Sequence record: NC_019410.1
DNA: 64,000 nt
Reading direction: 5' to 3' (one strand)
The notes under the pieces are model-generated. The model was not told where the DNA came from, made no database searches, and was given only the letters and a program-made list of their open reading frames with translations. This document shows, one piece after another, positions 1 to 64,000 of this stretch. Numbering within the stretch: position 1 is the stretch's first letter; each line of letters opens with the position of its first letter. The position numbers and the translations under genes are program-made.

Positions 1-162
1 GCGGTACATCCCCTGCTTCCAGAGGTTGGCTTCGTCGTCCATCGCGTGGCTCGACTTGTTGTACTCGGGATCGGGCTCGAACCCGAGCCGGCGGATGCCC
101 TCGTCGAAATCGGCCAGGACGCCGTCCATGTCGAGATAGATGGCGAAGTTCTTCAGGTTCAT
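1..162 (-). CDS. HAD-family 5'(3')-deoxyribonucleotidase-like protein (runs off window start)
   Basis: Manual translation MNLKNFAIYLDMDGVLADFDEGIRR; HAD motif I DxDGVLxDF; GGAG RBS upstream of ATG 162. Confidence 0.75.
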   Translation of the reverse strand, partial: MNLKNFAIYLDMDGVLADFDEGIRRLGFEPDPEYNKSSHAMDDEANLWKQGMYR

Positions 163-164
163 GG

Positions 165-365
165 TCACTCCGGAAATTGCGCGTGCAGCCCCATGGCGAT
201 GCGCGCCAGTTCGTAGGCGGTCTTGGTCTCCAACTCGCGGGTCGGCGTGCGCTCGATCTTGAGTTGGTCGCTCATCATGTGGATGGCGTGGATGATGTCG
301 CTCTTGCGCCTCTTCTCGTAGTAGCGGTGCGACGCGGTGGCGCGGATTTCGACGATCGCCATCAC
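165..365 (-). CDS. hypothetical protein (66 aa)
   Basis: ORF track; coupled to neighbours. Confidence 0.65.
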   Translation of the reverse strand: MMAIVEIRATASHRYYEKRRKSDIIHAIHMMSDQLKIERTPTRELETKTAYELARIAMGLHAQFPE

Positions 366-724
366 AGGGCTCCCGCGCAGGCCAGAGCCATCGCCCAGCC
401 GCGCTCGGTCGGCTCGAAGCGGGCGATTGGCCCCTTGACGTTCGGATCGTCGGAGAAATGCGGGTCGAGCCAGCCCTTGTTGGCGTGGATCACCTCGTCG
501 AGCGAGCGCGCCTCATAGACCAGGATTTTGCGGCCCTCGTAGTTGAGGGCGTCGGGGTACATGATCTCGACCACCGTGCAGCGGCCGACCTCCTGGCCCC
601 GGATGAGCCTCCAGCGCGCCGGGTCGGGATCGCCCGGCGTCAGCGTCACGGGAGACTGCCCGCCGGAGAAAAGCCGCATCTTGCTGGGCTCACGCGCCGA
701 GCGTCCGGTCGAGAACAATCGCAT
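362..724 (-). CDS. hypothetical protein (~120 aa)
   Basis: ORF 362..811 trimmed to ATG 724, just after upstream stop at 732. Confidence 0.65.
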   Translation of the reverse strand: MRLFSTGRSAREPSKMRLFSGGQSPVTLTPGDPDPARWRLIRGQEVGRCTVVEIMYPDALNYEGRKILVYEARSLDEVIHANKGWLDPHFSDDPNVKGPIARFEPTERGWAMALACAGAL

Positions 725-731
725 CCCCACC

Positions 732-1118
732 CTAGTCTCCCAGGCCCTGCATGGCGTTGTCGCGACTGTCCTCGGCGTCGGGCCGAGACGCCAGGGCCGC
801 CAGAAGGTCAACCGAGAGGTGGCGGTTGTAGATCGCCACGCCCTTATACTTGAAAAGCTCGCTGGCTTCGTGGATCAGAGCCCGCTCAACCGCCGCCCAG
901 GCCGTCTGGACGATCTCGGTGTCGGTGGCGTAGTAGGAGAGCTTCCACTTGCGCCCCTTCCACATCTCCGGCTCGCCGGTGACGGTGTTGACCCCGTCCT
1001 TGCAGACGATCTGGAGCCAGACCTCGGTGCGGCTGGTCCCGAGTCGGAACTCGAAGCCAGGATAGCTCAGGCGGTCGACGATGGTGCGGATCGATTGGGC
1101 GCTGCGACGATTCGCCAT
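732..1118 (-). CDS. hypothetical protein (128 aa)
   Basis: ORF track; protein-like composition; operon packing. Confidence 0.7.
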   Translation of the reverse strand: MANRRSAQSIRTIVDRLSYPGFEFRLGTSRTEVWLQIVCKDGVNTVTGEPEMWKGRKWKLSYYATDTEIVQTAWAAVERALIHEASELFKYKGVAIYNRHLSVDLLAALASRPDAEDSRDNAMQGLGD

Positions 1119-1120
1119 GC

Positions 1121-1582
1121 TCAGGGCCTCGACTTGATCAGCTTCTTCTTGCGTCGGGGCGGGCGCGGCGCGAGCGGGAAGCCGTGATCCGCGTACACGG
1201 GTTCGGGCGGCGGGGCGGGGAGGTCCGCCGGGCGTTCTAGGCTAAAGGCGTCCGCGTCGAGGTCGTAGATCGACACCCGATCGCTGTAGCCGTAGCGGTT
1301 GTCATGGTAGGTGATCCCGACGTCTCCCAGGCTGGAGACCATGATCACCCGGCAGGCCTTGCCCTTGTAGCGGCCGTAGAGCTTCGGCATGAAGCCGGCC
1401 TCCTCGATCGCCAGGGTCTCGGTGGCGTTGCCGGCGTTCAGCGCCAGGAAGCCCCGCACGATGGCCGGCAGCTTGTAGTCGCAGATCGCGCGGCTGTTGC
1501 TGACCTCGTAGGGCATGCCGATCTTGCCCTCCATCAGGGCGCCCAGGACCTCGGCGTCGCTCAGGGTTTCAGTCTCGGCCAT
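1121..1582 (-). CDS. hypothetical protein (153 aa), basic C-terminal tail
   Basis: ORF track; operon packing. Confidence 0.7.
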   Translation of the reverse strand: MAETETLSDAEVLGALMEGKIGMPYEVSNSRAICDYKLPAIVRGFLALNAGNATETLAIEEAGFMPKLYGRYKGKACRVIMVSSLGDVGITYHDNRYGYSDRVSIYDLDADAFSLERPADLPAPPPEPVYADHGFPLAPRPPRRKKKLIKSRP

Positions 1583-1838
1583 AGGTGATCCTGTACGGGA
1601 GCCCGCCGACGCAGATTTTCCCGCGTCGGCCGTCGGCGGTGGTGAAGCGGAAGCCCTGGCGGTTCTTGGTGCCGGCGCAGGACCACCATGCGCGGTGGAA
1701 GCTGACGACCTCGGCGCCGGTGGCGCGCTCGACCAGATGTCGAGCGTGACGCCCCTCCCAGGTGTAGGCCCAGACCCCGATGGCGAAGAAGACCAGAGTC
1801 AGGGAGCCATAGACGGCCCCTTTGACATAGTCCTCCAT
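1569..1838 (-). CDS. small membrane-anchored hypothetical protein (89 aa)
   Basis: N-terminal hydrophobic helix GAVYGSLTLVFFAIGVWAY. Confidence 0.7.
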   Translation of the reverse strand: MEDYVKGAVYGSLTLVFFAIGVWAYTWEGRHARHLVERATGAEVVSFHRAWWSCAGTKNRQGFRFTTADGRRGKICVGGLPYRITYGRD

Positions 1839-2215
1839 CAGGCCGCCACGAGCCCGGTGATCACGTCGGTGACGATGCGGCGTTTCTCGGCCGGCATGCC
1901 CGCCAGCGCCAGGATCGTCTTGGCGCCGATCTCGGCGACGGCGGTCTCGACGTCGGCCCGGCCGTCGGTCAGGAACGCCGGATCGTCGACCGGCGGATAG
2001 AAGTGCCCGATGTCCTTCTTCAGGAACTGGGCCGCCTCGTAGAGCTTCGAGGACGAGATGCGGTTGTGCCCGCGCTCGTATTTCTGGACCTGCTGGAAGG
2101 TCACGCCGATCGCCTCGGCGAGTTGGCCTTGCGAGAAGCCGGCCGTCTTGCGGGTGTCGCGCAACTTGCGCCCCACATAGACGTCGACGGGGTGCGGGGT
2201 CTTGTCGTCAGCCAT
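1838..2215 (-). CDS. XRE/HTH_3 transcriptional regulator (alphaproteobacterial type, 125 aa)
   Basis: PHPVDVYVGRKLR...SQGQLAEAIGVTFQQVQKYERGHNRISSSKLYEAA; start trimmed to ATG 2215. Confidence 0.9.
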   Translation of the reverse strand: MADDKTPHPVDVYVGRKLRDTRKTAGFSQGQLAEAIGVTFQQVQKYERGHNRISSSKLYEAAQFLKKDIGHFYPPVDDPAFLTDGRADVETAVAEIGAKTILALAGMPAEKRRIVTDVITGLVAA

Positions 2216-3194: not shown

Positions 3195-3475
3195 CAGGCG
3201 GCGCCCTGGGCGATTTCGTAGGTGATCTTCGAGACGCCGATGTCGACCACGAACCGGTCGGGCGAGCCGTCGAACACGTAGTTGGCCTGACACCCAATCG
3301 GCATCATCTTGCCGTTGTCCATCCAGATCGCGTCCGGAGTGGCCTCGACCACGCCGCGCACCTGGGCCTGAGCCGGAGAAGGTTGCATCTCCACGCCGCC
3401 CACGGTGATCGCCACGGCCGCGAGACGCGCGCCCGGCTGGTTCAACTTGGCGATCAGGTCCTGGATCGAGTTCAC
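3194..3475 (-). CDS. hypothetical protein (~93 aa)
   Basis: GTG 3475 preceded by AGAAGGAGG RBS and promoter. Confidence 0.7.
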   Translation of the reverse strand: MNSIQDLIAKLNQPGARLAAVAITVGGVEMQPSPAQAQVRGVVEATPDAIWMDNGKMMPIGCQANYVFDGSPDRFVVDIGVSKITYEIAQGAA

Positions 3476-3480
3476 GCGGC

Positions 3481-3548
3481 CTCCTTCTGTCGTTGTGTCG
3501 ACATAAGCTCTAGCCGTGGTTTTCCGGCCTGTCAACACACAACCGCCA
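3481..3548 (-). promoter_or_regulatory. phage promoter cassette (TGGC / TTGACA / TAGAGC / CGACACAAC / RBS)
   Basis: Minus strand TGGC-N9-TTGACA(3535-3530)-N17-TAGAGC-N6-CGACACAAC...GAAGGAGG. Confidence 0.8.
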
Positions 3549-6158: not shown

Positions 6159-6400
6159 GGCTCGACCTTCCGGACAGTGTAGGAGAATTCGTCGTGGACG
6201 CGACCGTCGAAACTAGCCTCGTAGCCGGGGCCGAGTTCGGCCAGGATGCGCGCCTCGATCTCGGCGAAGTCGATTTTCGCCATCGCCTGTTCGGCCGCCC
6301 GCATCTGCTGGAGGAAGCCGTCCTTGATCTGGCGCCCCGCCTCGGTGCGGATCGGGATGTTCTGGATCGGCGGCTCGGATTTCGACAGACGCTCGCCCAT
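6155..6400 (-). CDS. hypothetical protein (81 aa)
   Basis: ORF track; coupled. Confidence 0.65.
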   Translation of the reverse strand: MGERLSKSEPPIQNIPIRTEAGRQIKDGFLQQMRAAEQAMAKIDFAEIEARILAELGPGYEASFDGRVHDEFSYTVRKVEP

Positions 6401-6948
6401 CAGGCCCTCCGGCGATAGACCCGCACCGGGCGGGTGGGGAGGCGTTTCTCAGGCGGCTTATAGGCGACCAGGGCATGGCTGATGCAGTAGACGCCTGCCT
6501 CGGCGCGGCACCCGCAATGGCCAAAGTCCGGCGAGTTCGGGTCGCCATAGGGCCAGCGGCACATTCCGCGCTTGAGTTCGGCCGTCGCGAACAGCCGCGC
6601 CGGGCGCGGCGGGATGACCGCCGTCCCTTCAGGGACCAGGGCGAGCTTGGGCTTGGCCGGCGGAGCGGGCTTTTCGACCTTCTTGGGCTTGCGCGCCGTG
6701 GCCTTCTTGACCTTGCGGACCTGGATGCCCAGGCCGCGCGTCTTCTTGCGGCGGGCGGTCGGAGGCGGAACCTTCTCGCCCAGTTCGCCGGCGGCCTTCA
6801 GTCGGTCGGCCTTGCCGCAGACGGCGCTCTTGGTGCGCGGCACGCTCAGGCGCTGACCGATCTCCTTGGTCCCGACCGGCTCCGCCCAGAGCTTCTTGAG
6901 CAGGGCGATGTCCTCGTCCGGCCAGTCGGAATTCCGCTTCTTCACCAC
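6400..6948 (-). CDS. gcrA: GcrA cell-cycle regulator homologue (182 aa)
   Basis: N-term WPDEDIALLKKLWAE...EIGQRL...SAVCGKADRL and C-term CRWPYGDPNSPDFGHCG...YCISHALVAY match the two GcrA domains. Confidence 0.9.
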   Translation of the reverse strand: MVKKRNSDWPDEDIALLKKLWAEPVGTKEIGQRLSVPRTKSAVCGKADRLKAAGELGEKVPPPTARRKKTRGLGIQVRKVKKATARKPKKVEKPAPPAKPKLALVPEGTAVIPPRPARLFATAELKRGMCRWPYGDPNSPDFGHCGCRAEAGVYCISHALVAYKPPEKRLPTRPVRVYRRRA

Positions 6949-7170
6949 GCTTGCACTACTCCTTGATCTCGACGCTCTTGGGCGGATTGGGATGAGGAAC
7001 GAAGACCAGGGCCACGTCCTGACCGCCGGTATAGCGCGTGCGTCGGCTATAGAGCCAGCCGCCTTCCACCGCCAACCGCTCGGTCACCTGACCATCGGCT
7101 TCGTCGATCTTTTCCCACTTGGACTTCTTAGCCATCTTCCCCTCGAATTTGGCGGCACCCTAGAGGAGCG

Positions 7171-7219
7171 TTCGAGTGTTGACAAGCACCAATGTCGCTG
7201 GCTTTCGAGTGTTGACAAG
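7171..7219 (+). repeat. 16-bp direct repeat TTCGAGTGTTGACAAG x2
   Basis: Copies at 7171-7186 and 7204-7219, each with TTGACA. Confidence 0.85.
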
Positions 7220-7265
7220 TCCGGTGCTCGTCTATAGGGGAGACCGGGACGACAACGAAAGGAGC
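7199..7265 (+). promoter_or_regulatory. phage promoter cassette
   Basis: TGGC-N9-TTGACA(7212)-N17-TAGGGG-N6-GGACGACAAC-GAAAGGAG. Confidence 0.8.
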
Positions 7266-9470: not shown

Positions 9471-9471
9471 C

Positions 9472-9726
9472 ATGCTGACCAAGGACGAGATCACCTTCGC
9501 GGGCCTGATCAAGGCCATGGAGGACGCCCGACGCACCGCCAAGGCGGCGGGCGATCTCGTCAGCACGGCCGAGATCGACCGCTGGTTCAAGGAACACGCG
9601 CCGATCATCCGGGAGGTCCGCGACAAGGCCGAGGCCGACGAATTCGACGCTGGCGCGAGAGTGTTGACAGCCTCTGAGGAAGGGGCTAAAGACACCCTCG
9701 ACGACAGCGAAAGGAGCCTGCCTTGA
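9472..9726 (+). CDS. hypothetical protein (84 aa)
   Basis: ORF track; 3' end overlaps next promoter. Confidence 0.65.
   Translation: MLTKDEITFAGLIKAMEDARRTAKAAGDLVSTAEIDRWFKEHAPIIREVRDKAEADEFDAGARVLTASEEGAKDTLDDSERSLP
9651..9716 (+). promoter_or_regulatory. phage promoter cassette
   Basis: TGGC-N9-TTGACA(9664)-N17-TAAAGA-N6-CGACGACAGC-GAAAGGAG. Confidence 0.8.
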
Positions 9727-16652: not shown

Positions 16653-16655
16653 GCG

Positions 16656-54525: not shown

Positions 54526-54598
54526 CGAGGCCCGTTAACCACGTTTGTTAACCTCCGCCGGGGCCTTAACCCTAACACGGCGAGGGTTAACAGGTCCA

Positions 54599-54736
54599 GG
54601 GACCCTTCGAAATTAACCTTTCGGGGACCCTGGGAAATCGTAAGGCAGGGACCCTGGCCATTTTCCGGCTGGGGACCCTGGCAAATTCACCGCCGGGGAC
54701 CCTCCGAAATTCATCCTCGGGGACCCTGGCAAATCA
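54599..54736 (+). repeat. six ~24-bp tandem repeats, core GGGACCCT(GGC/CCG)AAATT
   Basis: GGGACCC at 54599, 54624, 54648, 54672, 54696, 54720. Confidence 0.9.
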
Positions 54737-54747
54737 AGGAGCCGGCG

Positions 54748-54939
54748 ATGGCCGAATTTCTCGCCCTGATCCCCAACCTCGCGCCGTTCCTGGTCTGGGG
54801 AATCCTCCTCTGGATCGCCGCCGAGGTGGTCTGGAGCGTCTGCCTCTGGGTCTATGGCCTGCGGACCCTGTTCAAGTTGCACCGCGATGATCTGGCCGAG
54901 GCGATCAGCTTCGAGCGGGCCTTGAGCCCCTTCGACTAG
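54748..54939 (+). CDS. small membrane protein (63 aa)
   Basis: AAGGAG RBS; hydrophobic LAPFLVWGILLWIAAEVVWSVCLWV. Confidence 0.7.
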   Translation: MAEFLALIPNLAPFLVWGILLWIAAEVVWSVCLWVYGLRTLFKLHRDDLAEAISFERALSPFD

Positions 54940-55022
54940 GCGCGGCCTGCCGACCTAAGTCACGGACTGTAGGTTTCGTGACAAGGTGAGATATTCCACA
55001 ACGATTTCAAAGGCTTACTGCG

Positions 55023-55271
55023 ATGTCGATCCGCACGTTCTTCCACGATCTGGCCGTCCGTTTCGTCGTTTTGGGGTGGATTTTTGCCCGAAAACCGCTG
55101 AAATGGGCTCCAAAAGGGCATAATTTTCAGCCTAAACCGCCGGTCCAGGTCGGCGCCCTGGCGGCCGGCTCGCTCCTCGCCCTCAGTCTGGCGCTCGGCG
55201 GGCTCTGGTTCCGCTTCACGTTTCCGGACAAAAGTCAAGTGGTCTCGCGCCGGCCGCAGGCTATGTCATAG
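55023..55271 (+). CDS. small membrane protein (82 aa)
   Basis: Two hydrophobic segments; lower GC; weak RBS. Confidence 0.5.
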   Translation: MSIRTFFHDLAVRFVVLGWIFARKPLKWAPKGHNFQPKPPVQVGALAAGSLLALSLALGGLWFRFTFPDKSQVVSRRPQAMS

Positions 55272-55332
55272 ACCGTGGGCTTCGTGACCAGATCACGCTT
55301 CCGTTACCGCTCCAGCCCTTGTGAGGCCTCGG

Positions 55333-55437
55333 ATGTTCGCCTTTCTCCGCCGGCTCAGCCTCGCCGCCGTCCATGGCGTGCTCTGGGCGATCCTCCTGGC
55401 GATGCTCGCCCTGGGCGGGCCGCGCCGCCCGCTCTAA
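55333..55437 (+). CDS. 34-aa hydrophobic peptide
   Basis: Manual translation MFAFLRRLSLAAVHGVLWAILLAMLALGGPRRPL; GAGG RBS. Confidence 0.55.
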   Translation: MFAFLRRLSLAAVHGVLWAILLAMLALGGPRRPL

Positions 55438-55489
55438 AGCGTCATATCTGACGCCTAAGGCCCCCTAAGGCCTCATCTGTGAGACATTC

Positions 55490-55525
55490 AACGCCCTCGT
55501 GTTCCTCTGAACGCGGGGGCGTTTT
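55490..55525 (+). terminator. Rho-independent terminator
   Basis: AACGCCCTCGTGTTC-CTCT-GAACGCGGGGGCGTT (G-U pairs) then T-run. Confidence 0.7.
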
Positions 55526-55630
55526 GACGTCGGCGCATTTTTGACTTGACGCGCGAGCGTTTTGACGCGGGCGCATTTTTGATTCGACGGGCGAGCGTTT
55601 TGACGTCCGAGCATTTTTCAACTTGACGTC
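55519..55630 (+). repeat. three 38-bp tandem repeats
   Basis: GCGTTTTGACGnnnGnGCATTTTTnAnTnGACG units at 55519, 55557, 55595. Confidence 0.9.
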
Positions 55631-55657
55631 GTTCCATTTACCGGGAGCGCCTTAGGG

Positions 55658-55824
55658 TTAACGCCGGCCGCCGAGCCCTGGGGCGATTTACCACCGCCAC
55701 GTTAACCTAACGCCTGTTAACCTATCGGTTGTTAAGGTTAACGCCCCGTTAGGGTTAACGCCCCTTAACCCTGCCCGCGTTAAGGTTAACGCGCCCCGGC
55801 CCAGGCCCTACCCGTTAACCTTAA
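55658..55824. promoter_or_regulatory. dense cluster of 11 TTAA (CtrA half-site-like) motifs
   Basis: TTAA at 55658, 55702, 55717, 55732, 55738, 55755, 55765, 55780, 55786, 55815, 55821. Confidence 0.7.
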
Positions 55825-55848
55825 CCGCCCGACCCCCGCGCCCAGGCC

Positions 55849-55882
55849 ATACCCGGTAGGGCCTGACGGCCCTACCGGGTAT
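55849..55882. repeat. perfect 15-bp inverted repeat with 4-nt loop
   Basis: ATACCCGGTAGGGCC-TGAC-GGCCCTACCGGGTAT. Confidence 0.9.
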
Positions 55883-55936
55883 GACCCCGCGCCCCGGCGG
55901 AGGCCAGGGACCGCCCCGGCGCTTTTTCGCGCCCCG

Positions 55937-55968
55937 TTTACCTTTTGTTAACGTCTGGCCTCTAGGGT
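55937..55968 (+). promoter_or_regulatory. CtrA-box promoter 1
   Basis: TTTA-CCTTTTG-TTAAC-N10-TAGGGT. Confidence 0.8.
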
Positions 55969-56016
55969 CGCCCTTGTCCCCGCCGCACTCCCGCGCCGGG
56001 CAAGGAGCTTCCCGCC

Positions 56017-56202
56017 ATGGTCCCCGACTCGATCATGAACCCCCGCGACCACTTCCACCGCCTGCGCGAGGAAACCGCCCGCGCTCTGGTCGAGGCCTTC
56101 GCCGAATCCGACCCCGGCGAGGATTACCGCGCCGAGGAAAAGGCCGGCGCGTGGGTTGTCGCCTATTACGACGCGGCGGGCGAATTCGTCGCCTATCTCT
56201 AG
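56017..56202 (+). CDS. hypothetical protein (61 aa)
   Basis: AAGGAG RBS. Confidence 0.7.
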   Translation: MVPDSIMNPRDHFHRLREETARALVEAFAESDPGEDYRAEEKAGAWVVAYYDAAGEFVAYL

Positions 56203-56226
56203 CCGCCTTCGCCCCCTGGCGCCGCG

Positions 56227-56258
56227 TTAACGGTTTGTTAACATGTCGGCGCCAGGGT
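56227..56258 (+). promoter_or_regulatory. CtrA-box promoter 2
   Basis: Perfect TTAA-CGGTTTG-TTAAC-N10-CAGGGT. Confidence 0.8.
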
Positions 56259-56301
56259 CGCCCTAGCCCGGCGCGTCGCCGCGCCTTCGGAGAAAACCGC
56301 C

Positions 56302-57105
56302 ATGCTCTACACCCCCGCCGCCCGCCGCCTTCGCGGCTATCGCGAAACCGCCGCGAAGAACGCCGAAATTCACGCCCGCCCGCACATGGCCGGCAACGTC
56401 GCCGGCTACAACGAGTCGGTGTGGCCGACGACGGCGCTAGGCGTCGCCGCCAAGGCCGGCGCCTTCAAGCGCCCCGAAACCGCCGGCAACTGGTCGGAGG
56501 ATCGCAAAGCCTATTACGCCCCCGCGTGGCCGGCCGGCTGGCGCGTGCTGGGCACGGCCGAAGAGGTCTGCCGCAAGGAAGGCTCGCGCCGGGTGGAACA
56601 TTCCGGATGGTACACGACGCCCGACGACTACAGCGCCACGCTTTCGGGCTATGTGCTGCAAATCCCCGCCCGCGACGGCCGCCCGCAATACGTCGCCGGG
56701 ACCGCCCATAGTGAATGGGACGGGGTGACCCTCTACCCCGCCGACCGCTACGACAACCCGCTTGACGCGGCGAGCGCCGCCGACCGTCACGCCGAACGCG
56801 ACGCCGAAGAGGAACGCGAATATCAAACCGCGTGGCAAGCGGGCCAGCGCTACGCCGAACTCGGCGCCGAAGCCAAGGAGGCCCGCAAGGAAGCGCTGGC
56901 GATCCTCGCCGAACGCCGCAAGGTCAAGGGGCTGGAAACCCCCGCCTTGTGCGGCGCGATCCGGGCGCAAGTCGCGGCCCTGCTAGGCCGGATCGAAGAG
57001 GCGCGCGCCTCGCGCGCCAAGCTCAAGGAAGGCGAGGACTCGCGCCTCATGTTCTACCCCTCCGCCGCCATGGTCGCGGCCTTCAATGACGGCGCGGCGT
57101 CGTGA
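56302..57105 (+). CDS. hypothetical protein (267 aa)
   Basis: GGAG RBS. Confidence 0.75.
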   Translation: MLYTPAARRLRGYRETAAKNAEIHARPHMAGNVAGYNESVWPTTALGVAAKAGAFKRPETAGNWSEDRKAYYAPAWPAGWRVLGTAEEVCRKEGSRRVEHSGWYTTPDDYSATLSGYVLQIPARDGRPQYVAGTAHSEWDGVTLYPADRYDNPLDAASAADRHAERDAEEEREYQTAWQAGQRYAELGAEAKEARKEALAILAERRKVKGLETPALCGAIRAQVAALLGRIEEARASRAKLKEGEDSRLMFYPSAAMVAAFNDGAAS

Positions 57106-57311
57106 AGGTCGCCCGCGATAGCTTCGCCGTGTTCTGGACCCTCCCGCAAGGCGGGGTCCAATTTCACGCCGACATAAAACGGGCGCTCTATCCGACCGCC
57201 CGCGACGCCGCCCGCGCTTTTAGCGCCATGTTCCCCCGTGACCGGGTCCGGAGCGTCCGCGACGCCTCCGGCCGCTTCCTGGCCTTCAAGGAGTCCGCCC
57301 CGTGCGCCTGA
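57102..57311 (+). CDS. hypothetical protein (69 aa)
   Basis: GTGA coupling. Confidence 0.6.
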   Translation: MKVARDSFAVFWTLPQGGVQFHADIKRALYPTARDAARAFSAMFPRDRVRSVRDASGRFLAFKESAPCA

Positions 57312-57583
57312 CAAGCTACAACGTCAACGGAACCGGCTTTAAGGGCGGCTCCGCCCCGCCCGTCCCCGCCCAAGGCCTGACCGGTCACGCCGACGGCTTG
57401 AACCTTTGGGTTCCCTCGCGCGAGCATATCGCCGCCATGCTCCCGCAACGCTGGCGCCACGCCTTCGCCCGCGCGTCGTTTTGGTATGACGCGCACGACA
57501 ATAAAAAGCCGTGTCGCGCCGACCTCTACGACTCGCGCGGCCGGTACCTGACTCAGGTCTGGGCGCACCCGGTTTTCAGCTAG
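57302..57583 (+). CDS. hypothetical protein (93 aa)
   Basis: AAGGAG RBS, GTG start. Confidence 0.65.
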   Translation: MRLTSYNVNGTGFKGGSAPPVPAQGLTGHADGLNLWVPSREHIAAMLPQRWRHAFARASFWYDAHDNKKPCRADLYDSRGRYLTQVWAHPVFS

Positions 57584-57589
57584 GCCAGG

Positions 57590-57625
57590 ACGCCCCGGAA
57601 AATCTTCCGGGGCGTTTACCTTTTG
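57590..57625 (+). terminator. terminator overlapping CtrA box
   Basis: ACGCCCCGGAA-AATC-TTCCGGGGCGT then TTACCTTTT. Confidence 0.75.
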
Positions 57626-57678
57626 TTAACCTCTGGCCTCTAGGGTGACTTTCGCCGCCGGGCAATCCCGCCCGCCGG
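57615..57678 (+). promoter_or_regulatory. CtrA-box promoter 3 plus AATCCC-loop hairpin
   Basis: TTTA-CCTTTTG-TTAAC-N10-TAGGGT; GGGC-AATCCC-GCCC at 57660-57673. Confidence 0.8.
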
Positions 57679-57704
57679 ACCCTCTTTCAAGGATTGCTCC
57701 CGTC

Positions 57705-58754
57705 ATGACCTCTCATTCCATGGTCGCGCACCGTTGGGCGCAGGACGACGAGAACGGCCGCACCGCGCGCGGCTTCAACATGTATTTCGAGCGCTACGGG
57801 CGCGGCGCCGACCGCGTCAACGTGATTTTTTCCTACGGGACTCACTTCCCGGCCGCCGCCTTCGTGACCGACGCGCACGGCCGCCGCGTGGTTCTGGTGA
57901 CGACTCGCGGCTACAGCGTTTCGACCGCGAAACACCTTTCCCACATCCGCCGCGCCATCCCGTCCGGGACCCCCTGCTTTTCCGTGCCGCACGTGTCGCG
58001 GATGCACAAGCCGGGCGGGTCGGGCGACTTCCACGGGGACAACCTGCGCGCCTATGTCGAGAGCGCCGCCGGCCTCGCCGAAAAGGCCAAGCGCGCCCGC
58101 GTCAACGGCCCTTGGCTGCTTAGCCAAGCCCGCGAAACCCTCGCCGAAGCGCAACGCTACGCCGACGCCTTCAAGCTGAAAACCAAGGTTCCGGCCTTGG
58201 AAGACGTCGCCGGCCAATGGGCGAAGATGACGGCCGCCAAGGCGCGGGCCGAAGCCAAGGCCAAGCGTGACGCCGAAAAGGCCGCCAAGGCGCGCCGCGA
58301 AGCCGAACGGCTCGCCGACGCCGAAGCCTTCGCCGCTTGGATGCGCGGCGAGCGCCAGAGCGCCCCGTTTAGCTACCGGGTGCGCGATGACGGGACCGTC
58401 TATCTTCGCCGCTTCCGGGGCGTGGTCCGCGACCTGCGCAGCCAAGAGCGCGACGGCTCGCGCGTCGATGAACTGCAAACCTCGCAAGGCGCGGCCGTGC
58501 CGTGGGAACACGCGGTCAAGGCCTTCCGGTTCATCAAGCTTTGCCGCGAACGCGGCGAGAGCTTCCACCGCAACGGCCGGGTGATTCGCGTCGGACACTT
58601 CCAAGTTGACGCGATCAGCCCGAACGGGGACATGACGGCCGGTTGTCACCGGTTCGCGTGGGATGAAATCGAACGCCTCGCCAGGGCCGAAGGGGTTTTC
58701 GACCTCCCCGCCGACGCTGGCGCCGTCGAAACCCGGCAAGCCGAACCGGCCTAA
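57705..58754 (+). CDS. hypothetical phage protein (349 aa)
   Basis: AAGGATTGC leader; FSYGTHF...GYSVSTAKH and TSQGA...VGHF...GCH motifs. Confidence 0.75.
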   Translation: MTSHSMVAHRWAQDDENGRTARGFNMYFERYGRGADRVNVIFSYGTHFPAAAFVTDAHGRRVVLVTTRGYSVSTAKHLSHIRRAIPSGTPCFSVPHVSRMHKPGGSGDFHGDNLRAYVESAAGLAEKAKRARVNGPWLLSQARETLAEAQRYADAFKLKTKVPALEDVAGQWAKMTAAKARAEAKAKRDAEKAAKARREAERLADAEAFAAWMRGERQSAPFSYRVRDDGTVYLRRFRGVVRDLRSQERDGSRVDELQTSQGAAVPWEHAVKAFRFIKLCRERGESFHRNGRVIRVGHFQVDAISPNGDMTAGCHRFAWDEIERLARAEGVFDLPADAGAVETRQAEPA

Positions 58755-58772
58755 GCCTCCCCGCCCCTCTCG

Positions 58773-58799
58773 CGCCCCGGCTCCCCGCCGGGGCGTTTT
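58773..58799 (+). terminator. Rho-independent terminator
   Basis: CGCCCCGG-N7-CCGGGGCG-TTTT. Confidence 0.75.
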
Positions 58800-58809
58800 C
58801 GTGTACGCG

Positions 58810-58873
58810 GTAACCTTTTGTTAACTTCTGGCCTCTAGGGTGACTTTCGCCGCCGGGCAATCCCGCCCGCCGG
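58810..58873 (+). promoter_or_regulatory. CtrA-box promoter 4 plus AATCCC-loop hairpin
   Basis: GTAA-CCTTTTG-TTAAC-N10-TAGGGT; AATCCC at 58859. Confidence 0.8.
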
Positions 58874-58889
58874 CCAAGGATCGCAGACT

Positions 58890-59189
58890 ATGAATCTTTT
58901 CGTTGTCGCCATTGACCCCGCCCTCATCCCTTCGGCCGCCGGCTTCGTGGTCGCCTCCCCCTACGGGTGCGGCAAGTGGCGCGCGTGCGTCGGGAGCGAG
59001 GCGGACATGATCGCGCTTCGCGACAAGATGCGCCGCGCGCACCCGGCCCCGGAAGGCTACAGCGTCCAGCCCCTGGCGTCGTTCCTGGCCTATCTGGAGA
59101 CGGTCGGGGATAGCCCTTATGACCGGTTCCGCGCCCATGACGCCGCCGCCCGCATCCTTGACACCCTGACGACGCATCTCGCCGCCTAG
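58890..59189 (+). CDS. hypothetical protein (99 aa)
   Basis: AAGGATCGC leader. Confidence 0.7.
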   Translation: MNLFVVAIDPALIPSAAGFVVASPYGCGKWRACVGSEADMIALRDKMRRAHPAPEGYSVQPLASFLAYLETVGDSPYDRFRAHDAAARILDTLTTHLAA

Positions 59190-59247
59190 CCCCGCCAAGC
59201 CCCCGGCCGCGCGCCGGGGGCGCTTTCCCTCGAAAGGATCGCCGACC

Positions 59248-59559
59248 ATGACAACCCGTCTTATCGCCGTTCGCGGCCCGACCGCCGCCGAACTCGCCGA
59301 CCCGTCCAGCCGCGCGGGCGGCGCCGAAGTCGTTTTCGAGCGCCGCGACCGCGAAGGCCGCACGCGCCTTGTGTTCGCCTCGACCTGCTACGGCTCATAT
59401 CAGCAATGGGGCGAAACCCGCGACGTGCTCGCCGACAACGTCGAGGCGGTCACGCTCTGGGCCGAAGGCATGGCGGCCGTTGCCGCCCTCATCGACGAGA
59501 GCGACGACGACGACGAGAGCGACGACGCCCCGGCCGAAGATGACGACGGGGAGGCGTGA
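59248..59559 (+). CDS. hypothetical protein with acidic tail (103 aa)
   Basis: AAGGATCGC leader. Confidence 0.7.
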   Translation: MTTRLIAVRGPTAAELADPSSRAGGAEVVFERRDREGRTRLVFASTCYGSYQQWGETRDVLADNVEAVTLWAEGMAAVAALIDESDDDDESDDAPAEDDDGEA

Positions 59560-59562
59560 GCC

Positions 59563-59982
59563 ATGCGCACAACCAAGGCTCAACGCTTCGCCGCCATCGC
59601 CTTTGACGCCCTGGCCAAGGCCCTAAGCGAGCCGCGCCAAGCCGTCGCCCGCGTGACCAAATGGGAGGGCGCGGGCCATAGCTTCGCCAACCTGCAACGC
59701 GATTATGAGCGGTACGGCCCCGGCGCCCGCTCATGGTTCGGCCGGGCTGAAATGCGCTTCTTTGGGACGCGCCTAGAGGCCGCGCCGCTGGATTTCCCGG
59801 CGCTGGGCTGCACCCTCTTTCTGACCTCCGAAACCCCGCCCGGCGCCGGCCGGGTCTGGACCCTTCGCGCCTATGTCTGGGCTTCGGCCGATATCACCAC
59901 GCTAACCCATGGCGACGAAACCGACGCGGCGACCGCGCAAGCGGCCTTTGACCTGCTTTGGCGGGTCCTTTCCGGACAGTAA
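59563..59982 (+). CDS. hypothetical protein (139 aa)
   Basis: GGAGG RBS; WFGRAEMRFFGTRL motif. Confidence 0.7.
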   Translation: MRTTKAQRFAAIAFDALAKALSEPRQAVARVTKWEGAGHSFANLQRDYERYGPGARSWFGRAEMRFFGTRLEAAPLDFPALGCTLFLTSETPPGAGRVWTLRAYVWASADITTLTHGDETDAATAQAAFDLLWRVLSGQ

Positions 59983-60042
59983 CCTTTTGTTAACTTCTGC
60001 CCGCTAGGGTCTTCTTGCGGCCGGGCAATCCCGCCCGGCCGC
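59979..60042 (+). promoter_or_regulatory. CtrA-box promoter 5 plus AATCCC-loop hairpin
   Basis: GTAA-CCTTTTG-TTAAC-N10-TAGGGT; perfect stem GCGGCCGGGC-AATCCC-GCCCGGCCGC 60017-60042. Confidence 0.8.
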
Positions 60043-60060
60043 ATCTTGGAGACAGCGCCC

Positions 60061-60333
60061 ATGACCCGCGCTCAAGCCCTCGCCGACATGAACGCCCTTC
60101 CCGGTATCATCGCCTCCTTTGAGCGCGAGACGGGCGAATATCGCGTGACCCTGCGCTTTGGCCCGCTCCCCATGGGGCGCGGCGCCCAAGAGTGGATGCG
60201 CGCGCGCCGCGAAGCCGTCGCCAGCTACAGCGACGACAAGGCCGACGCCCTGGCCACCGCCCGCGACATGTCCGCCCGCTGGGAGGCGATGAGCGCCGAA
60301 GAGCGTTCGCGCCTCTATCACAACCCCGCCTAA
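60061..60333 (+). CDS. hypothetical protein (90 aa)
   Basis: GGAG RBS before ATG 60061. Confidence 0.7.
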   Translation: MTRAQALADMNALPGIIASFERETGEYRVTLRFGPLPMGRGAQEWMRARREAVASYSDDKADALATARDMSARWEAMSAEERSRLYHNPA

Positions 60334-60399
60334 GACCCCGCGCGCCGCCCTGGCCTTCGCCGGGGCGGCTCCCTCAACCCCTCGCAAGGATCGCACCCC

Positions 60400-60684
60400 A
60401 TGACCGCCCGTAAGCCCCTGACCAAGGAACAAAAGGCCCGCCGCCGCGCGACCCGCCGCGCCGCCCGCCTCAACTGGTCGGATGAGCGCCGCGCTCGCGA
60501 ATTCGAGCGTCAAGCCCGCTTCTTCCTGATGATCGCCACCCGCGCCCAAGGCGCCGGCCAAGGCCAGGAAGCCGCCCGCCTCGCCACGGTCGCACAACGC
60601 AAGGTGACTAACTGGCGCATGGCGCAGGCCTGCGCCCGGATTAACGCCCTGGCCGCGCATCCGTTCGCGGCCGTGGTCGCCTAA
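60400..60684 (+). CDS. hypothetical basic protein (94 aa)
   Basis: AAGGATCGC leader. Confidence 0.7.
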   Translation: MTARKPLTKEQKARRRATRRAARLNWSDERRAREFERQARFFLMIATRAQGAGQGQEAARLATVAQRKVTNWRMAQACARINALAAHPFAAVVA

Positions 60685-60697
60685 GGAGGCCCGCCCG

Positions 60698-60880
60698 ATG
60701 ACGCACCCTCACGCCCTGGCGCTGATCGCCCTCGCCGAAAAGGTGTTACCGCTTACCCGGCTGCACCCGCTCGACCAACGCGCCGCCGCCGTCGATCTAA
60801 TCGGCGACCTCTACCGCCTCGCCGACGATATCGACGCGACCCCGCAAGCCCCCGCCCTGACGCAACCGAAGGCCGCCTAA
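60698..60880 (+). CDS. hypothetical protein (60 aa)
   Basis: AAGGAGG RBS. Confidence 0.7.
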   Translation: MTHPHALALIALAEKVLPLTRLHPLDQRAAAVDLIGDLYRLADDIDATPQAPALTQPKAA

Positions 60881-60883
60881 GCC

Positions 60884-61474
60884 ATGAACCCGAACCGCTA
60901 CCGCCTCGCGCCCCGCGACCGCTTCAGCCGTGAGCTTGCCGAAACGCTCTATCAGGCGGCCGAAGCCGTCGCCCGCGTGATTCCGCTCATGCCGGAGTCC
61001 GCCCCCGATGAGCGCCGCGCGCTGGGCAAGGTCCGCGCCGACCTTCTAACCCATAGCGCCGGCGCCCTTGTTCCCAAGCCGCCGGCCGCCGTGCTCGAAA
61101 CCCTCGTTTGGGTTGTCGAGATGGCGCAAGATCGCGCGACTAACGCCGATTTCAACACCGCCCAAGAAGGACTCGACGAGCACGAGTCCCTAGCCTTTGT
61201 CGCCGACTGGCTGGAAGCCGAAGGCCAGGACGTGACGCCGATTCGCAACGCGCAACCGTCCGCCGACGCCCTGGCCGAACTCGCCGCCCGCCGCGACGCC
61301 GAACAAGCGGCGCTAGACGCCTTGGAGGCCGAAGCCCTGGCCGAAGCGCCGGGCGACGTGATCACCGACGCCTTGCGCCCCTATCTGGGCGCCGCCCTGG
61401 CCGAAAACCACGCCGACGACGTGCTAGACGCCCTCACGCGCGCCGGCTTCCAAATCACCCGCAAGGAGGCCTAA
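60884..61474 (+). CDS. hypothetical protein (196 aa)
   Basis: Operon packing. Confidence 0.7.
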   Translation: MNPNRYRLAPRDRFSRELAETLYQAAEAVARVIPLMPESAPDERRALGKVRADLLTHSAGALVPKPPAAVLETLVWVVEMAQDRATNADFNTAQEGLDEHESLAFVADWLEAEGQDVTPIRNAQPSADALAELAARRDAEQAALDALEAEALAEAPGDVITDALRPYLGAALAENHADDVLDALTRAGFQITRKEA

Positions 61475-61479
61475 AGCCC

Positions 61480-62058
61480 ATGACCGACTCCGCCAAGATC
61501 ACCGGCGCGCTCGCGCTACTCGCCATCGCGGCCGATAATCTCCGCCAAGGCCCGGCCATGTCCAAGGCCGCCGACAACGTCACCAACGTCTGTAACTACG
61601 CCCTGACGCGCGCGACCATGCTCAAGGCCGCCGACCAAATCGGCGAGGCGCTGGAGGCGCTGGGCGCCCTGCAAGCGGGCGGCTATGTGATCGCCCGCCG
61701 CCGCGACGTTTTCACCGATGCGGGCGAGAAGCTGGGCGACCTGTTGGCGGCGCTTTATGACGCCGTCCCGAACTACGCCGTAAGATCGCAGCGCCTCGCC
61801 GACGCCCTGAGTCCCGCGCGAAATTACGTCTATCAGCCCCGGTTCCGGGTCAAGCTGGACGCCGCGCCCGGCGCGCTTTTGACCGACTGCGACACGGGCG
61901 CAACGGTCTATTTCCAGCCGGGCGACGACGCCGACGCCTTCCGGGCCGAATTCGCCCCGTGGGTTCACGCCGCCAACGTGACGGCCGAAGGCGCGGCCCT
62001 GGCCTCGATGATGAACCCGACCGCCGAAGAGTATTTCAGCCCCGCCACGGGGGTCTAA
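61480..62058 (+). CDS. hypothetical protein (192 aa)
   Basis: AAGGAGG RBS. Confidence 0.7.
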   Translation: MTDSAKITGALALLAIAADNLRQGPAMSKAADNVTNVCNYALTRATMLKAADQIGEALEALGALQAGGYVIARRRDVFTDAGEKLGDLLAALYDAVPNYAVRSQRLADALSPARNYVYQPRFRVKLDAAPGALLTDCDTGATVYFQPGDDADAFRAEFAPWVHAANVTAEGAALASMMNPTAEEYFSPATGV

Positions 62059-62063
62059 CGCCC

Positions 62064-62366
62064 GTGGCCCTGACCTTCGCCCCGCAATCGACGCGCTACG
62101 CCGTGGAAGTCCCCGAACGCGACTTTCTGGCCCTGACCCGCGCCGAGGAAATTCTAGCCCCTGGCCCCTATCTGGAGCCGTCGCTTAGCGAGCGTTTGGA
62201 GGCGCAAGCCGGCGTTTGGGATGTCGAGTATAACGGCCATTTCGGCGCGGCCGTTTACTTGACGCTCGACGTTGACGCCGACTCCCCGGCCGCCCGCGAC
62301 GCCCTGGCCTCGATCATCGCCGACCAACTGGCCAAGGCCAAGGCGTGGAAGCGCCAGCCCGCCTAA
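62064..62366 (+). CDS. hypothetical protein (100 aa)
   Basis: GTG 62064 within ORF 61959..62366; WDVEYNGHFG motif. Confidence 0.65.
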   Translation: MALTFAPQSTRYAVEVPERDFLALTRAEEILAPGPYLEPSLSERLEAQAGVWDVEYNGHFGAAVYLTLDVDADSPAARDALASIIADQLAKAKAWKRQPA

Positions 62367-62547
62367 GTCATCATTCCTATCGTCTATGACTTGTCACCGG
62401 CCGAACTCTTGCCCGGTGACAGTCTGGGCAAGTAAAGCTCACTCTGGATTTTATGACTTAGCGCAAAGGATTGAAATTGCTCGAAAAATTCCTCGAAGCT
62501 CACAAAGTTGTTTTCTGGCTGCTTTTGCTGGCCTGTTTGTGGCGCTT

Positions 62548-62613
62548 TTAACGGTTTGTTAACCCCTGGCCCTCTAGGGTCGAATTCCCGGCGCGGCAAT
62601 CCCGCCGCCCGGC
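62548..62613 (+). promoter_or_regulatory. CtrA-box promoter 6 plus AATCCC-loop hairpin
   Basis: Perfect TTAA-CGGTTTG-TTAAC-N11-TAGGGT; GCGGC-AATCCC-GCCGC. Confidence 0.8.
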
Positions 62614-62634
62614 CTTCCTTCGGAGCTTCTGATC

Positions 62635-63081
62635 ATGTTCGCTTCCGTGACCCTTCCCGCCCATGACGCCCAAGGCCTGAGCCTCGAAACCGTCCACATG
62701 GTTTTCGCCCGCGAACTGGCGCAACATTTCGACCACGTGATTTCCGCCCCCGTGGTCGAAAGCTGGCGCGACGAGGACACCGGCGCCGACCACGCGCAAG
62801 CCGCCGTTTGCTTCACCGTCTCGGCGACCCCCGCCGCGTGGGAAGCCAAGGGCGGGCGCCTCGCGCGCCGGCTGGAAAACCTCGCCGCGCGCTATGCCGC
62901 CGACTGCGACGCCCCGGCCCTGACTGTCACCCACTGCGACGGCCAAACGGTCTATGTCGGCGCTCTGGAAGCCCTGGCGCGCCCCGCCCCGGTGCAAGGC
63001 CCGACCCGTGAGGCGGACCCGGCTTTCCTCCCCCGCCAGCGTGAGGACAAGGCCGCCCGCTTCGATCGCCTGACCGCCTAG
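62635..63081 (+). CDS. hypothetical protein (148 aa)
   Basis: GGAG RBS. Confidence 0.7.
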   Translation: MFASVTLPAHDAQGLSLETVHMVFARELAQHFDHVISAPVVESWRDEDTGADHAQAAVCFTVSATPAAWEAKGGRLARRLENLAARYAADCDAPALTVTHCDGQTVYVGALEALARPAPVQGPTREADPAFLPRQREDKAARFDRLTA

Positions 63082-63097
63082 CCCCTGGCCTCCCCCT

Positions 63098-63130
63098 AGC
63101 GCACCGCCCCTAGAAAGGCGGTGCGCTTTT
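63098..63130 (+). terminator. Rho-independent terminator
   Basis: AGCGCACCGCC-N8-GGCGGTGCGCT-TTT. Confidence 0.8.
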
Positions 63131-63139
63131 CTGTGTCTG

Positions 63140-63172
63140 TTTACTTGTTGTTAAGGAATAGCCTGCTAGTGT
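63140..63172 (+). promoter_or_regulatory. CtrA-box promoter 7
   Basis: TTTA-CTTGTTG-TTAA-N12-TAGTGT. Confidence 0.7.
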
Positions 63173-63223
63173 CCCCTTGTTGGCGGACGCATCCCGCGCC
63201 CGCCCCTTTCTGGATCGCTCCCC

Positions 63224-63616
63224 ATGGCTCGCCCCTCTGACCTGCTCAACGTCAACGCCGCCCGCGTCCTGGCTTGCCTTGAGCCTATCGCCGCCGCCGC
63301 TAAGACCGCCCCGGCCGCCGACCGCGCCGCCCTTTCCTACCTGCTCGACGCTGGCGAGTATGTCGCCGCGTGGCGCCGCAACCTCACGGAAACCGACCGC
63401 CGCAAGGCCTATGGCGCGGCCTGCGCCGCCGAAGCCCTGGCGCTCGCTAACGCCTATCAGCCCGCCACCCTGCAAGGCGGCGCCGTCCGCCGCGCTCTGG
63501 GCGCCTATGCCGCCGCCCTAAAGGTCCTGCTAGACGGGGAGCCGGTCAAGGCGGTGCGCGCCGCCGAAGGCGCGGCGCTTTCGGTCCGCGCTCGCTACGC
63601 CAACACCCGCCTTTAA
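63224..63616 (+). CDS. hypothetical Ala-rich protein (130 aa)
   Basis: GGATCGC leader. Confidence 0.7.
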   Translation: MARPSDLLNVNAARVLACLEPIAAAAKTAPAADRAALSYLLDAGEYVAAWRRNLTETDRRKAYGAACAAEALALANAYQPATLQGGAVRRALGAYAAALKVLLDGEPVKAVRAAEGAALSVRARYANTRL

Positions 63617-63644
63617 CCTCTTGTTAACACCTCCCGGCTATGGT
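63613..63644 (+). promoter_or_regulatory. CtrA-box promoter 8
   Basis: Perfect TTAA-CCTCTTG-TTAAC-N10-TATGGT; first TAA is the upstream stop codon. Confidence 0.8.
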
Positions 63645-63670
63645 CGGGAGGTCGCAAGGAGACACCCGAC

Positions 63671-63865
63671 ATGACCCGCCCCGGCCCCGCCTCGCTCCTG
63701 ACCCCGCAAGCCCGCTTCTCGTCGCCGCGCGTCCTGATCCTTCCGGGCGCGGCTCCCATGCCGATTCGCCAGCCGCGCGGCCTTTGCGCCGTCGAGTGCG
63801 TCGCCCTTGGCGTGACGCTGGGCGCGGCGCTCTACCTCGCCGCCCGCGTGTTCGGTCTGGTCTGA
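63671..63865 (+). CDS. small protein with C-terminal TM helix (64 aa)
   Basis: AAGGAG RBS; VALGVTLGAALYLAARVFGLV. Confidence 0.6.
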   Translation: MTRPGPASLLTPQARFSSPRVLILPGAAPMPIRQPRGLCAVECVALGVTLGAALYLAARVFGLV

Positions 63866-63899
63866 CCAGACCCCCGCCCCGCCCCCGGTCGGACCGGTC

Positions 63900-63928
63900 G
63901 GGGGTGTGTCCCATAATGACACACCCCC
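63900..63928. repeat. perfect 11-bp inverted repeat
   Basis: GGGGGTGTGTC-CCATAAT-GACACACCCCC. Confidence 0.8.
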
Positions 63929-64000
63929 GCCACCTAGTATCTTTTTTGATTCGGAGGGACCCAAAGGCCCCCTACGTTAACCATTTTTGGCGGCGCCCCC

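Follow-up and report, generated by a model that had tools for sequence, protein, structure and literature searches.

Bacterial cell-cycle control is modelled above all on Caulobacter, whose classic phage is phiCbK. Here we describe the promoters of Karma, a close relative of phiCbK, in a window of 64,000 nucleotides (the whole stretch of DNA analysed, to which positions refer unless the genome is named). The window is 100% identical to positions 157829-221828 of the record of Caulobacter virus Karma (CcrKarma, JX100811/NC_019410), a phiCbK-like siphophage with a genome of 221,828 bp, and forms its right third. Most of the regulatory picture is already in print, as data or hypothesis, for phiCbK, namely CtrA sites in its direct terminal repeats (DTRs; 2022), a phage GcrA (2012), and TgrL together with an infection time course (2023). 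Nor is the general idea of cell-cycle mimicry new; Gill 2012 and Mascolo 2022 (PMC9437464) had already proposed that the phage GcrA shifts the cell-cycle state of the host.

Four described systems invite comparison. The work of Mascolo et al. 2022 (PMC9437464) concerns the same phage group, the same repeat and the same CtrA sites; it differs from ours in that CtrA/SciP-type half-sites at a promoter class outside the repeat, called class 3 below, went unreported by its full-site scan. The Caulobacter GcrA/CcrM module (Fioravanti 2013; Haakonsen 2015; Wu 2018, 2023) is echoed in Karma by a PF07750 protein with the sigma-70 domain-2 contacts and the zinc site, and by a GANTC within a recurrent phage promoter element, but four of the six base contacts of the phage protein are changed, the GANTC lies near -38 with flanks other than YGAKTCG, and no CcrM-like methylase is encoded by the phage according to Pfam. 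As in phi29, with sites for host Spo0A, and in LexA-controlled phage switches, host regulator sites occur in phage promoters and the phage programme would follow the state of the host cell; unlike those systems, Karma shows up to three host inputs (CtrA, SciP and GANTC methylation/GcrA) on different promoter classes, together with its own copy of a regulator. Finally, the pre-early (first-step-transfer) region of T5 is likewise a non-permuted terminal repeat of about 10 kb with small genes that each have their own promoter and terminator. The T5 pre-early promoters are of ordinary host type, whereas those of the Karma repeat are predicted to depend on a cell-type-specific activator, and the two-step DNA entry of T5 is not a demonstrated feature of phiCbK-type phages.

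Three promoter classes in the Karma genome

Gene and operon calls were those of the deposited annotation, and the comparison phages were phiCbK, Rogue and Colossus, with the BL10 lineage added for GcrA and the class 3 box. Genes in the window run leftwards from about 7135 and rightwards from about 7271. The right copy of the DTR occupies 53747..64000 on the plus strand (10,254 bp; repeat_region 211575-221828, identical to record positions 1-10254). It starts within the 3' end of terL and contains gp334-gp353 and every promoter of the first class.

Karma encodes no RNA polymerase; its promoters are best explained as three types, separate in space and read by the host sigma-73 RNA polymerase, an explanation in which, taken as a whole, we place about even confidence. 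Class 1 consists of CtrA-box promoters in the DTR, class 2 of promoters combining TGGC, TTGACA and GACGACAAC, and class 3 of promoters in which a GANTC-containing box is fused to TTGACA. A preliminary description of the window, made from its letters, had proposed non-overlapping promoter classes with a partitioned cell-cycle wiring; the classes do occupy separate stretches, and the genome is indeed partitioned as to its cell-cycle sites. Classes 2 and 3 appear undescribed.

CtrA-box promoters of the terminal repeat

Across the whole 222-kb genome, TTAA-N7-TTAA occurs as three distinct perfect sites and six with one mismatch, and all nine lie inside the DTR. Eight of these near-perfect CtrA boxes sit in promoter modules, at 55937, 56227, 57615, 58810, 59979, 62548, 63140 and 63613. 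In each module, about 10 nt separate the CtrA box from a CTAGGG-type -10, behind which come a GC-rich leader hairpin and the ribosome-binding site. phiCbK, Rogue and Colossus keep this arrangement with invariant spacing; the -10 begins 25-26 nt after the start of the box in 44 of the 45 class 1 promoters in the repeats of the four phages. Because this distance is fixed, the box occupies the -35 position, as it does in CtrA-activated host promoters.

All eight modules are on the plus strand. The promoter before gp337 (55937..56001) combines a one-mismatch CtrA box with a CTAGGG -10 and an ACUCCC-loop leader hairpin, and that before gp338 (56227..56301) has the perfect box TTAACGGTTTGTTAAC. The modules before gp341 (57612..57678), gp342 (58807..58875) and gp345 (59976..60042, with a perfect 10-bp stem) and the promoter before gp351 (62546..62614, with a perfect box) carry AAUCCC-loop leader hairpins, at 57653-57678, 58848-58875, 60017-60042 and 62587-62614, respectively. 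The last two promoters precede gp352 (63140..63190, with a CAUCCC-type hairpin) and gp353 (63613..63670, with a perfect box and a CTATGG -10). The other Karma class 1 leaders have an AUCCC or ACUCCC loop, and those of Colossus mostly AUCGG on different stems.

The perfect boxes before gp338 and gp351 belong to promoters whose phiCbK orthologues, those of gp005 and gp018, are bound and activated by phosphorylated CtrA (CtrA~P) and lose their activity in a ctrA mutant (PMC9437464). These experimentally validated orthologues support a dependence of the DTR promoters on a CtrA box at the -35. The class that the preliminary description had placed at 56-64 kb, defined by a CtrA box and an AAUCCC hairpin, corresponds to the eight modules, four of them with that hairpin. 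The CtrA part of that observation is correct, yet already published for the sister phage phiCbK. What is new for class 1 is the promoter anatomy, in which the box replaces the -35, the spacing is fixed, the -10 is shared, a leader hairpin follows and the SciP-type extension is absent. No class 1 box carries that extension, and none of the eight promoters contains GANTC.

Promoters with an invariant leader box

The sequence GACGACAAC occurs 19 times in the genome, 18 times in a single architecture. Ten copies lie in the window, all on the plus strand and about 36 nt past a TTGACA. The architecture comprises TTGGC, 8-9 nt, GTTGACA, 16-17 nt, a CTAGAA-like -10, 7-10 nt and then GACGACAAC, followed directly by GAGGAGG and the start codon; GACGACAAC is invariant and stands at the start of a leader of about 20 nt. 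With variants included, the window holds 12 class 2 promoters on the plus strand (7212-37566) and one on the minus strand (3535), in keeping with the stretch of 3-38 kb previously assigned to this class (13 promoters at 3.5-37.6 kb), and the class extends on the minus strand to genome position 134 kb. Karma has 18 exact copies, phiCbK 15 and Rogue 20, against one in Colossus and none for a reversed control pattern, and the TTGGC element is conserved across Karma, phiCbK and Rogue. We found no paper containing the motif. By their sequence, class 2 promoters are near-consensus sigma-73 promoters, and GANTC is missing from 11 of 12, the exception being the promoter before gp251.

A class 2 variant on the minus strand (3440..3548; TTGGCG, GTTGACA, CTAGAG and an GACACAACGACAG leader, identical in phiCbK) serves gp230-gp229-gp228 and genes beyond. 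Of these genes, gp228 (1838..2215, minus strand) encodes an XRE-family helix-turn-helix protein (HTH_3 PF01381, E 3e-12), so the XRE protein of the preliminary description is real. It is the orthologue of phiCbK TgrL (gp216), and its start is identical to the published phiCbK tgrL primer and clone. In phiCbK, tgrL is an early gene that peaks at 15 min, the first time point (PMC10688885). Because tgrL lies behind a class 2 variant and peaks this early, class 2 is probably an early class.

On the plus strand, class 2 promoters precede gp236 (7199..7256, diverging from the gcrA promoter), gp245 (9651..9708, with the GACGACAGC variant), gp251 (12785..12842, the sole one with GANTC sites), gp258 (16643..16700), gp262 (18159..18216), gp280 (25869..25926), gp284 (27272..27329, with a TTGCCA -35), gp290 (31082..31139, where an 8-bp stem containing the ribosome-binding site has the leader box in its loop), gp296 (33689..33746, with a long leader), gp302 (36160..36218) and gp305 (37553..37611, at the head of the long gp305-gp321 operon). 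A class 2-like promoter before gp288 (28497..28596) has TGGC, GTTGACG and CTAAGA with a different, longer leader.

The promoters before gp258, gp290 and gp296 form an ACACTCTCGCGCCAAC-spacer subclass (16656, 31095 and 33702) with the identical spacer ACACTCTCGCGCCAACATAGAA, which is also present in phiCbK and Rogue; they have no upstream TTGGC, and its reverse complement, GCCAA, lies within the spacer instead. Several class 2 leaders (for example, 31123-31150) contain a 4-8-bp stem with GACGACAAC as its loop and the ribosome-binding site as its 3' arm (CCUCCUCG...CGAGGAGG). Two of these stems are annotated as terminators; transcription of the 5' arm depends on the start site. A sigma-54 reading of TGGC (GG-N10-GC; TGGCAC-N5-TTGC) was rejected: with TGGC 9-10 nt ahead of TTGACA, the spacing is two bases too long; GC is missing at -12; and a conserved -10 of the sigma-73 type comes 16-17 nt later.

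Core-operon promoters with a GANTC box

A k-mer screen of intergenic DNA, aimed at late promoters, yielded the class 3 box, GTCGTGAATC fused to TTGACA, which belongs to a near-palindrome of 17 bp, TGTC-N2-GANTC-N2-GACA. There are 23 such boxes in Karma, 22 at genome positions 19.6-116.3 kb, outside the window, and one at window positions 48485-48500. Every box precedes an operon start by 46-236 nt, and the operons encode the portal, scaffold and major head protein, head-tail adaptor, tail genes, endolysin-holin, ribonucleotide reductase, DNA polymerase, helicase and resolvase-terS-terL. The 15-mer is found at syntenic sites 19 times in phiCbK and 22 times in the much more diverged Rogue, and neither in Colossus nor in controls. 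The box is also multi-copy in a viral contig of the putative BL10 lineage. In the Karma/phiCbK, Rogue and BL10 lineages, GcrA and the class 3 box are found together; Colossus is without either.

The window copy is one of four elements at 48457..48531 (plus strand) before gp327-resolvase-terS-terL, where tandem promoters lie at 48457 and 48495. These are P1 (TTGACA-N16-CTAGAC), an inverted repeat over the P1 -10, the class 3 box, and a GTTAACCAC half-site on the opposite strand at 48523-48531.

Two further features mark the class. First, a TTAAC half-site occurs within 70 nt after the box, close to the -10 or to the predicted transcription start, in 12 of 23 promoters, against 1% expected (P about 1e-18). 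Eight of the 23 promoters have half-sites matching the SciP form, GTTAACCAT or GTTAACCAC, when the CCAC variant and either strand are counted; these are predicted sites. The in-vivo SciP consensus is (G/A)TTAACCAT(A/G), which marks CtrA promoters silenced in G1; promoters of the G1 class, pilA among them, are not targeted by SciP (PMC4083442). Second, the box retains GANTC despite a 3.8-fold genome-wide depletion of this sequence. The GANTC lies at about -40 to -36 and reads TGAATCT, not the preferred YGAKTCG. The Colossus analogue of class 3, CCAGAATTC-TTGACA, has no GANTC and is still followed by TTAACCAT.

In the literature searched, the class 3 string turned up in unrelated contexts only, and no paper describing the box was found. 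Other readings of the box were rejected. As an abundant site for a host regulator it fails because bacterial genomes show only scattered single matches, at about the chance rate, and four matches in one Opitutaceae metagenome-assembled genome are the inverted-repeat ends of an unrelated element. A proposed SciP motif, TGTCGCG, was set aside as an account of the TGTCGTG arm, the motif being contested and the in-vivo consensus different (PMC4083442).

Colossus has promoter families of its own: TTGACG-N11-GTTTCTTTACA-N8-GACGA[T/A]CA, with about 14 copies; GAGAGTTGACAG[A/C]CGGC, with about 10; and GCCAG-N4-5-TTGACA, often then followed by TTAACC, with about six.

The phage GcrA and candidate signalling proteins

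The phage GcrA, gp234 (6400..6948, minus strand), matches PF07750 with an E value of 5e-25 (89 bits against a cut-off of 26.9), so this protein of the preliminary description is real, with its sigma-binding domain kept. It was aligned to the host GcrA structures 7YE1, 5YIX and 5YIU, and both domains align (7YE1 chain G over residues 8-169). Of the sigma-contact and zinc residues of host GcrA listed by Wu et al. 2018 (PMC5887438), gp234 keeps the sigma-70 domain-2 contacts W120, G123, D124, P125, F130, Y142, V149, A150 and Y151 and the Cys3His zinc ligands; changes at the sigma interface are K119R, S126N and F132H. From this residue conservation, sigma-73 binding is predicted to be retained. 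The positions that read N6-methyladenine in YGAKTCG, R33, N34, I37, G38, H41 and R42, are K, S, C, G, D and R in gp234, with two of six identical, and its DNA specificity is probably altered. Rogue GcrA is 62% identical to that of Karma, and the repeat DNA of Rogue is about 75% identical.

The gp235-gcrA-gp231 operon has its own promoter (7150..7190, minus strand; TTGTCA-N16-CTAGGGT), conserved in phiCbK and Rogue, in which we found no CtrA box, no GANTC and no GACGACAAC. GANTC, the CcrM site read by host GcrA, occurs 297 times in the genome against about 1123 expected. Host GcrA boxes act at -30, at -20 (in the spacer) or at +5 to +30 (PMC9976885). At the known GcrA positions (the -35/-10 spacer or +5 to +30), GANTC is found in none of eight class 1 and one of 12 class 2 promoters, and the class 3 GANTC lies outside them. 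The density of GANTC in the terminal repeat is about twice the genome average. A search for a CcrM-like phage methylase found no such enzyme by Pfam; gp126 proved to be a C5-cytosine methylase, and gp129 matches no Pfam family.

Two further proteins had been put forward as phospho-signalling modulators. The phosphatase, gp278 (24585..25280, plus strand), is real: it matches Metallophos PF00149 with an E value of 4e-15 (57.3 bits against a cut-off of 21.5) and, by this match, is a generic calcineurin-like metallophosphatase of the lambda NinI type. The supposed phospho-His swivel protein, gp251 (586 aa; 12856..14616, plus strand), is a probable one. Its C-terminal ~100 aa, containing GGSVAH, fall below the PF00391 threshold (11.7 bits, cut-off 23.1, E 0.21), although positions 2-68 of the 72-position profile are covered. 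In a weak PDB match (E 0.02) to the pyruvate kinase C-terminal domain 2E28, GGSVAH, with its His at the canonical spacing, pairs with GGLTSH, and all 30 of 30 language-model neighbours are PF00391 clusters. These three weak signals are concordant and point to a swivel domain of the phosphoenolpyruvate-utiliser type. The N-terminal 380 aa gave no match, and a single-sequence fold model of the C-terminus (predicted local distance difference test score, 45) was not used. Overall, gp251 looks like a dikinase-type enzyme. Profile scans found no feature tying gp278 or gp251 to CtrA, DivK or the nitrogen-related phosphotransferase system (PTS-Ntr), and the phospho-signalling mimicry proposed for them finds no footing in a generic phosphatase and a dikinase-like protein.

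Promoter use during infection

From these motifs, their positions and conservation, and the domains of the phage proteins, we infer an order of firing, a repression of class 3 by SciP/CtrA and a target for the phage GcrA. Class 1 promoters would need CtrA~P, because a CtrA box stands in for the absent -35. CtrA~P is abundant in the swarmer cell, the cell infected by the phage, and the repeat is present at both genome ends, so the small DTR genes would sit on whichever end enters first. Because the boxes are without the SciP-type CAT extension, class 1 would fire in G1, like the host pilA class. Class 2 would drive early accessory genes including tgrL, with the gcrA operon served by its own plain promoter nearby, and both would be expected to fire without any phage factor. 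Class 3 may be the point where the cell cycle is read. CtrA and SciP would damp these promoters during host G1, and the phage GcrA, with its sigma-binding domain intact and its DNA-reading residues altered, would ride on sigma-73 and help them fire; it is more likely to be aimed at class 3 than at class 2. To this whole three-class model, with class 3 as the GcrA target, we assign equal chances of holding and of failing.

A more elaborate version, which we consider doubtful, would make the phage GcrA a retargeted sigma-73 cofactor whose altered DNA-binding domain reads the GANTC-containing GTCGTGAATC box next to the -35 of every core operon. Since CcrM is missing during most of the life of the infected cell, the methylation state of the box would change as the phage DNA replicates; through the GcrA-box pair, core and late expression would then be coupled to replication and to the host G1-to-S transition, with the CtrA/SciP half-sites repressing in G1. 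If true, the phage would carry a copy of the epigenetic cell-cycle module of its host and direct it at its own promoters.

Several points weigh against the favoured model. Class 3 promoters precede both replication genes, reported as early, and structural genes, reported as middle or late; because genes of different reported timing follow it, the box alone cannot set timing. The position of its GANTC (about -40 to -36) is outside those of host GcrA (PMC9976885), its TGAATCT is not YGAKTCG, and the phage GcrA may not read GANTC at all, because four of six base-contact residues differ. The co-occurrence of GcrA and the class 3 box amounts to a single phylogenetic contrast, GcrA being confined to one clade. 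Lastly, Mascolo et al. argue that CtrA-activated phage genes would be silent in swarmer cells (PMC9437464).

This last argument belongs to a reading of its own, lytic deferment, under which the repeat genes would fire only once CtrA re-accumulates in the predivisional cell, as a late gate and not a first step. The CtrA binding and activation seen at two phiCbK repeat promoters (PMC9437464) accord with it, as does the silencing of many CtrA-activated host promoters by SciP in G1 (PMC4083442). SciP targets, however, bear (G/A)TTAACCAT(A/G), an extension that class 1 boxes are without, and pilA-type G1 promoters are not among them. A DTR of small self-promoted genes also resembles a T5-type pre-early region. 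In addition, transcripts of phiCbK account for 14% of mRNA as early as 15 min (PMC10688885), their source genes unspecified. We judge lytic deferment unlikely; class 1 may come first, as we and the preliminary description have it, or late, as Mascolo et al. argue.

Another explanation, to which we give similarly low credence, is that the classes reflect only the separate origin and strength tuning of modules. GANTC and TTAAC outside the CtrA class would then have no regulatory role, and the phage GcrA would act on host genes (Gill et al.) or titrate sigma-73. Such an ancestry would suit the coincidence of classes with genome blocks, the differing timing of class 3 genes, the non-canonical position and flanks of the GANTC, and the lack of positional skew of predicted GcrA or SciP sites in Mascolo et al. 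(PMC9437464). It sits poorly with a class 3 15-mer that is exact at syntenic sites in Rogue, despite the divergence of GcrA and repeat DNA given above, with the strong TTAAC association, and with the keeping of GANTC in the box against its genome-wide depletion.

The cascade of the preliminary description fares worst. CtrA promoters would fire first; the phage GcrA, aided by the phosphatase and the phospho-His protein through a reset of CtrA/DivK signalling, would next activate class 2, mimicking the G1-to-S transition before the origin fires. The spatial separation of the classes and the intact sigma-binding domain of GcrA fit this scheme; GACGACAAC does fall shortly downstream of the predicted start, within the +5 to +30 range of host GcrA boxes (PMC9976885), and among the phages examined exact GACGACAAC promoters are numerous only in those bearing GcrA (15-20, against one in Colossus). 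Near-consensus sigma-73 promoters should need no activator, though, and tgrL, behind one of them, already peaks at 15 min. The link between GcrA and class 2 is unsupported, because GANTC is absent from 11 of 12 of these promoters, GACGACAAC is not a GANTC, and Colossus keeps a related GACGA[T/A]CA leader without GcrA; with GcrA in a single clade, the Colossus contrast is weakened as an argument for GcrA as class 2 activator. Nor is a handover from CtrA to GcrA borne out, gcrA being under its own promoter and not one of the CtrA class. Nothing ties gp278 or gp251 to CtrA, DivK or PTS-Ntr. We regard the cascade as highly improbable.

The favoured model comes with a promoter map of CtrA-dependent repeat promoters, putatively constitutive early promoters, and core-operon promoters with a methylation site and a CtrA/SciP half-site. 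The map makes lytic deferment and resetting by the phage GcrA testable by reporter assays, chromatin immunoprecipitation and in-vitro transcription, and its three motifs can be used by annotators to mark operon starts in this phage subfamily.

Additional elements of the window

TTGACA promoters, operator-flanked and plain, had been noted at 45-48 kb, and they are present at 45058, 46564, 48457 and 48495. Before gp322, two 18-bp palindromes (ACAACC-N6-GGTTGT) accompany a TTGACA-N17-CTAGAC promoter (44999..45086, plus strand; TTGACA at 45058); the palindromes are upstream of the promoter, not over it, and the Rogue orthologue of this promoter bears an GACGACAAC leader. A plain consensus sigma-73 promoter, TTGACA-N16-CTAACC with a leader of about 150 nt, precedes gp326 (46564..46591, plus strand). 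Between gp326 and the promoters of the terS/terL operon lies a 250-bp island (47920..48170) of 27-42% GC in a genome of 66% GC, a candidate DNA-unwinding element or origin judging by its composition.

Within the DTR, ten encoded proteins (gp338 to gp352) were scanned and no informative family was found; the sole family match was that of gp344 (59563-59982) to DUF7447 (E 8e-22). Just past terL, four TTAAC half-sites (54534-54613) precede six copies of GGGACCCT at almost exactly 24-nt spacing (54599-54727), which look like iterons or a cis site for packaging or replication. Three 38-nt tandem repeats (GCGTTTTGACG...CATTTTTGA) at 55511-55624 adjoin a cluster of about 12 TTAAC/GTTAAC half-sites with irregular, non-canonical spacing (55657..55826), upstream of the first class 1 promoter. 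This cluster may serve as a CtrA sink or as some other cis site. Finally, GTTAACCAT occurs at 63976-63983 (genome position 10231), 17 nt from the end of the genome and DTR; in the left copy of the repeat, it lies upstream of the gp021 block.

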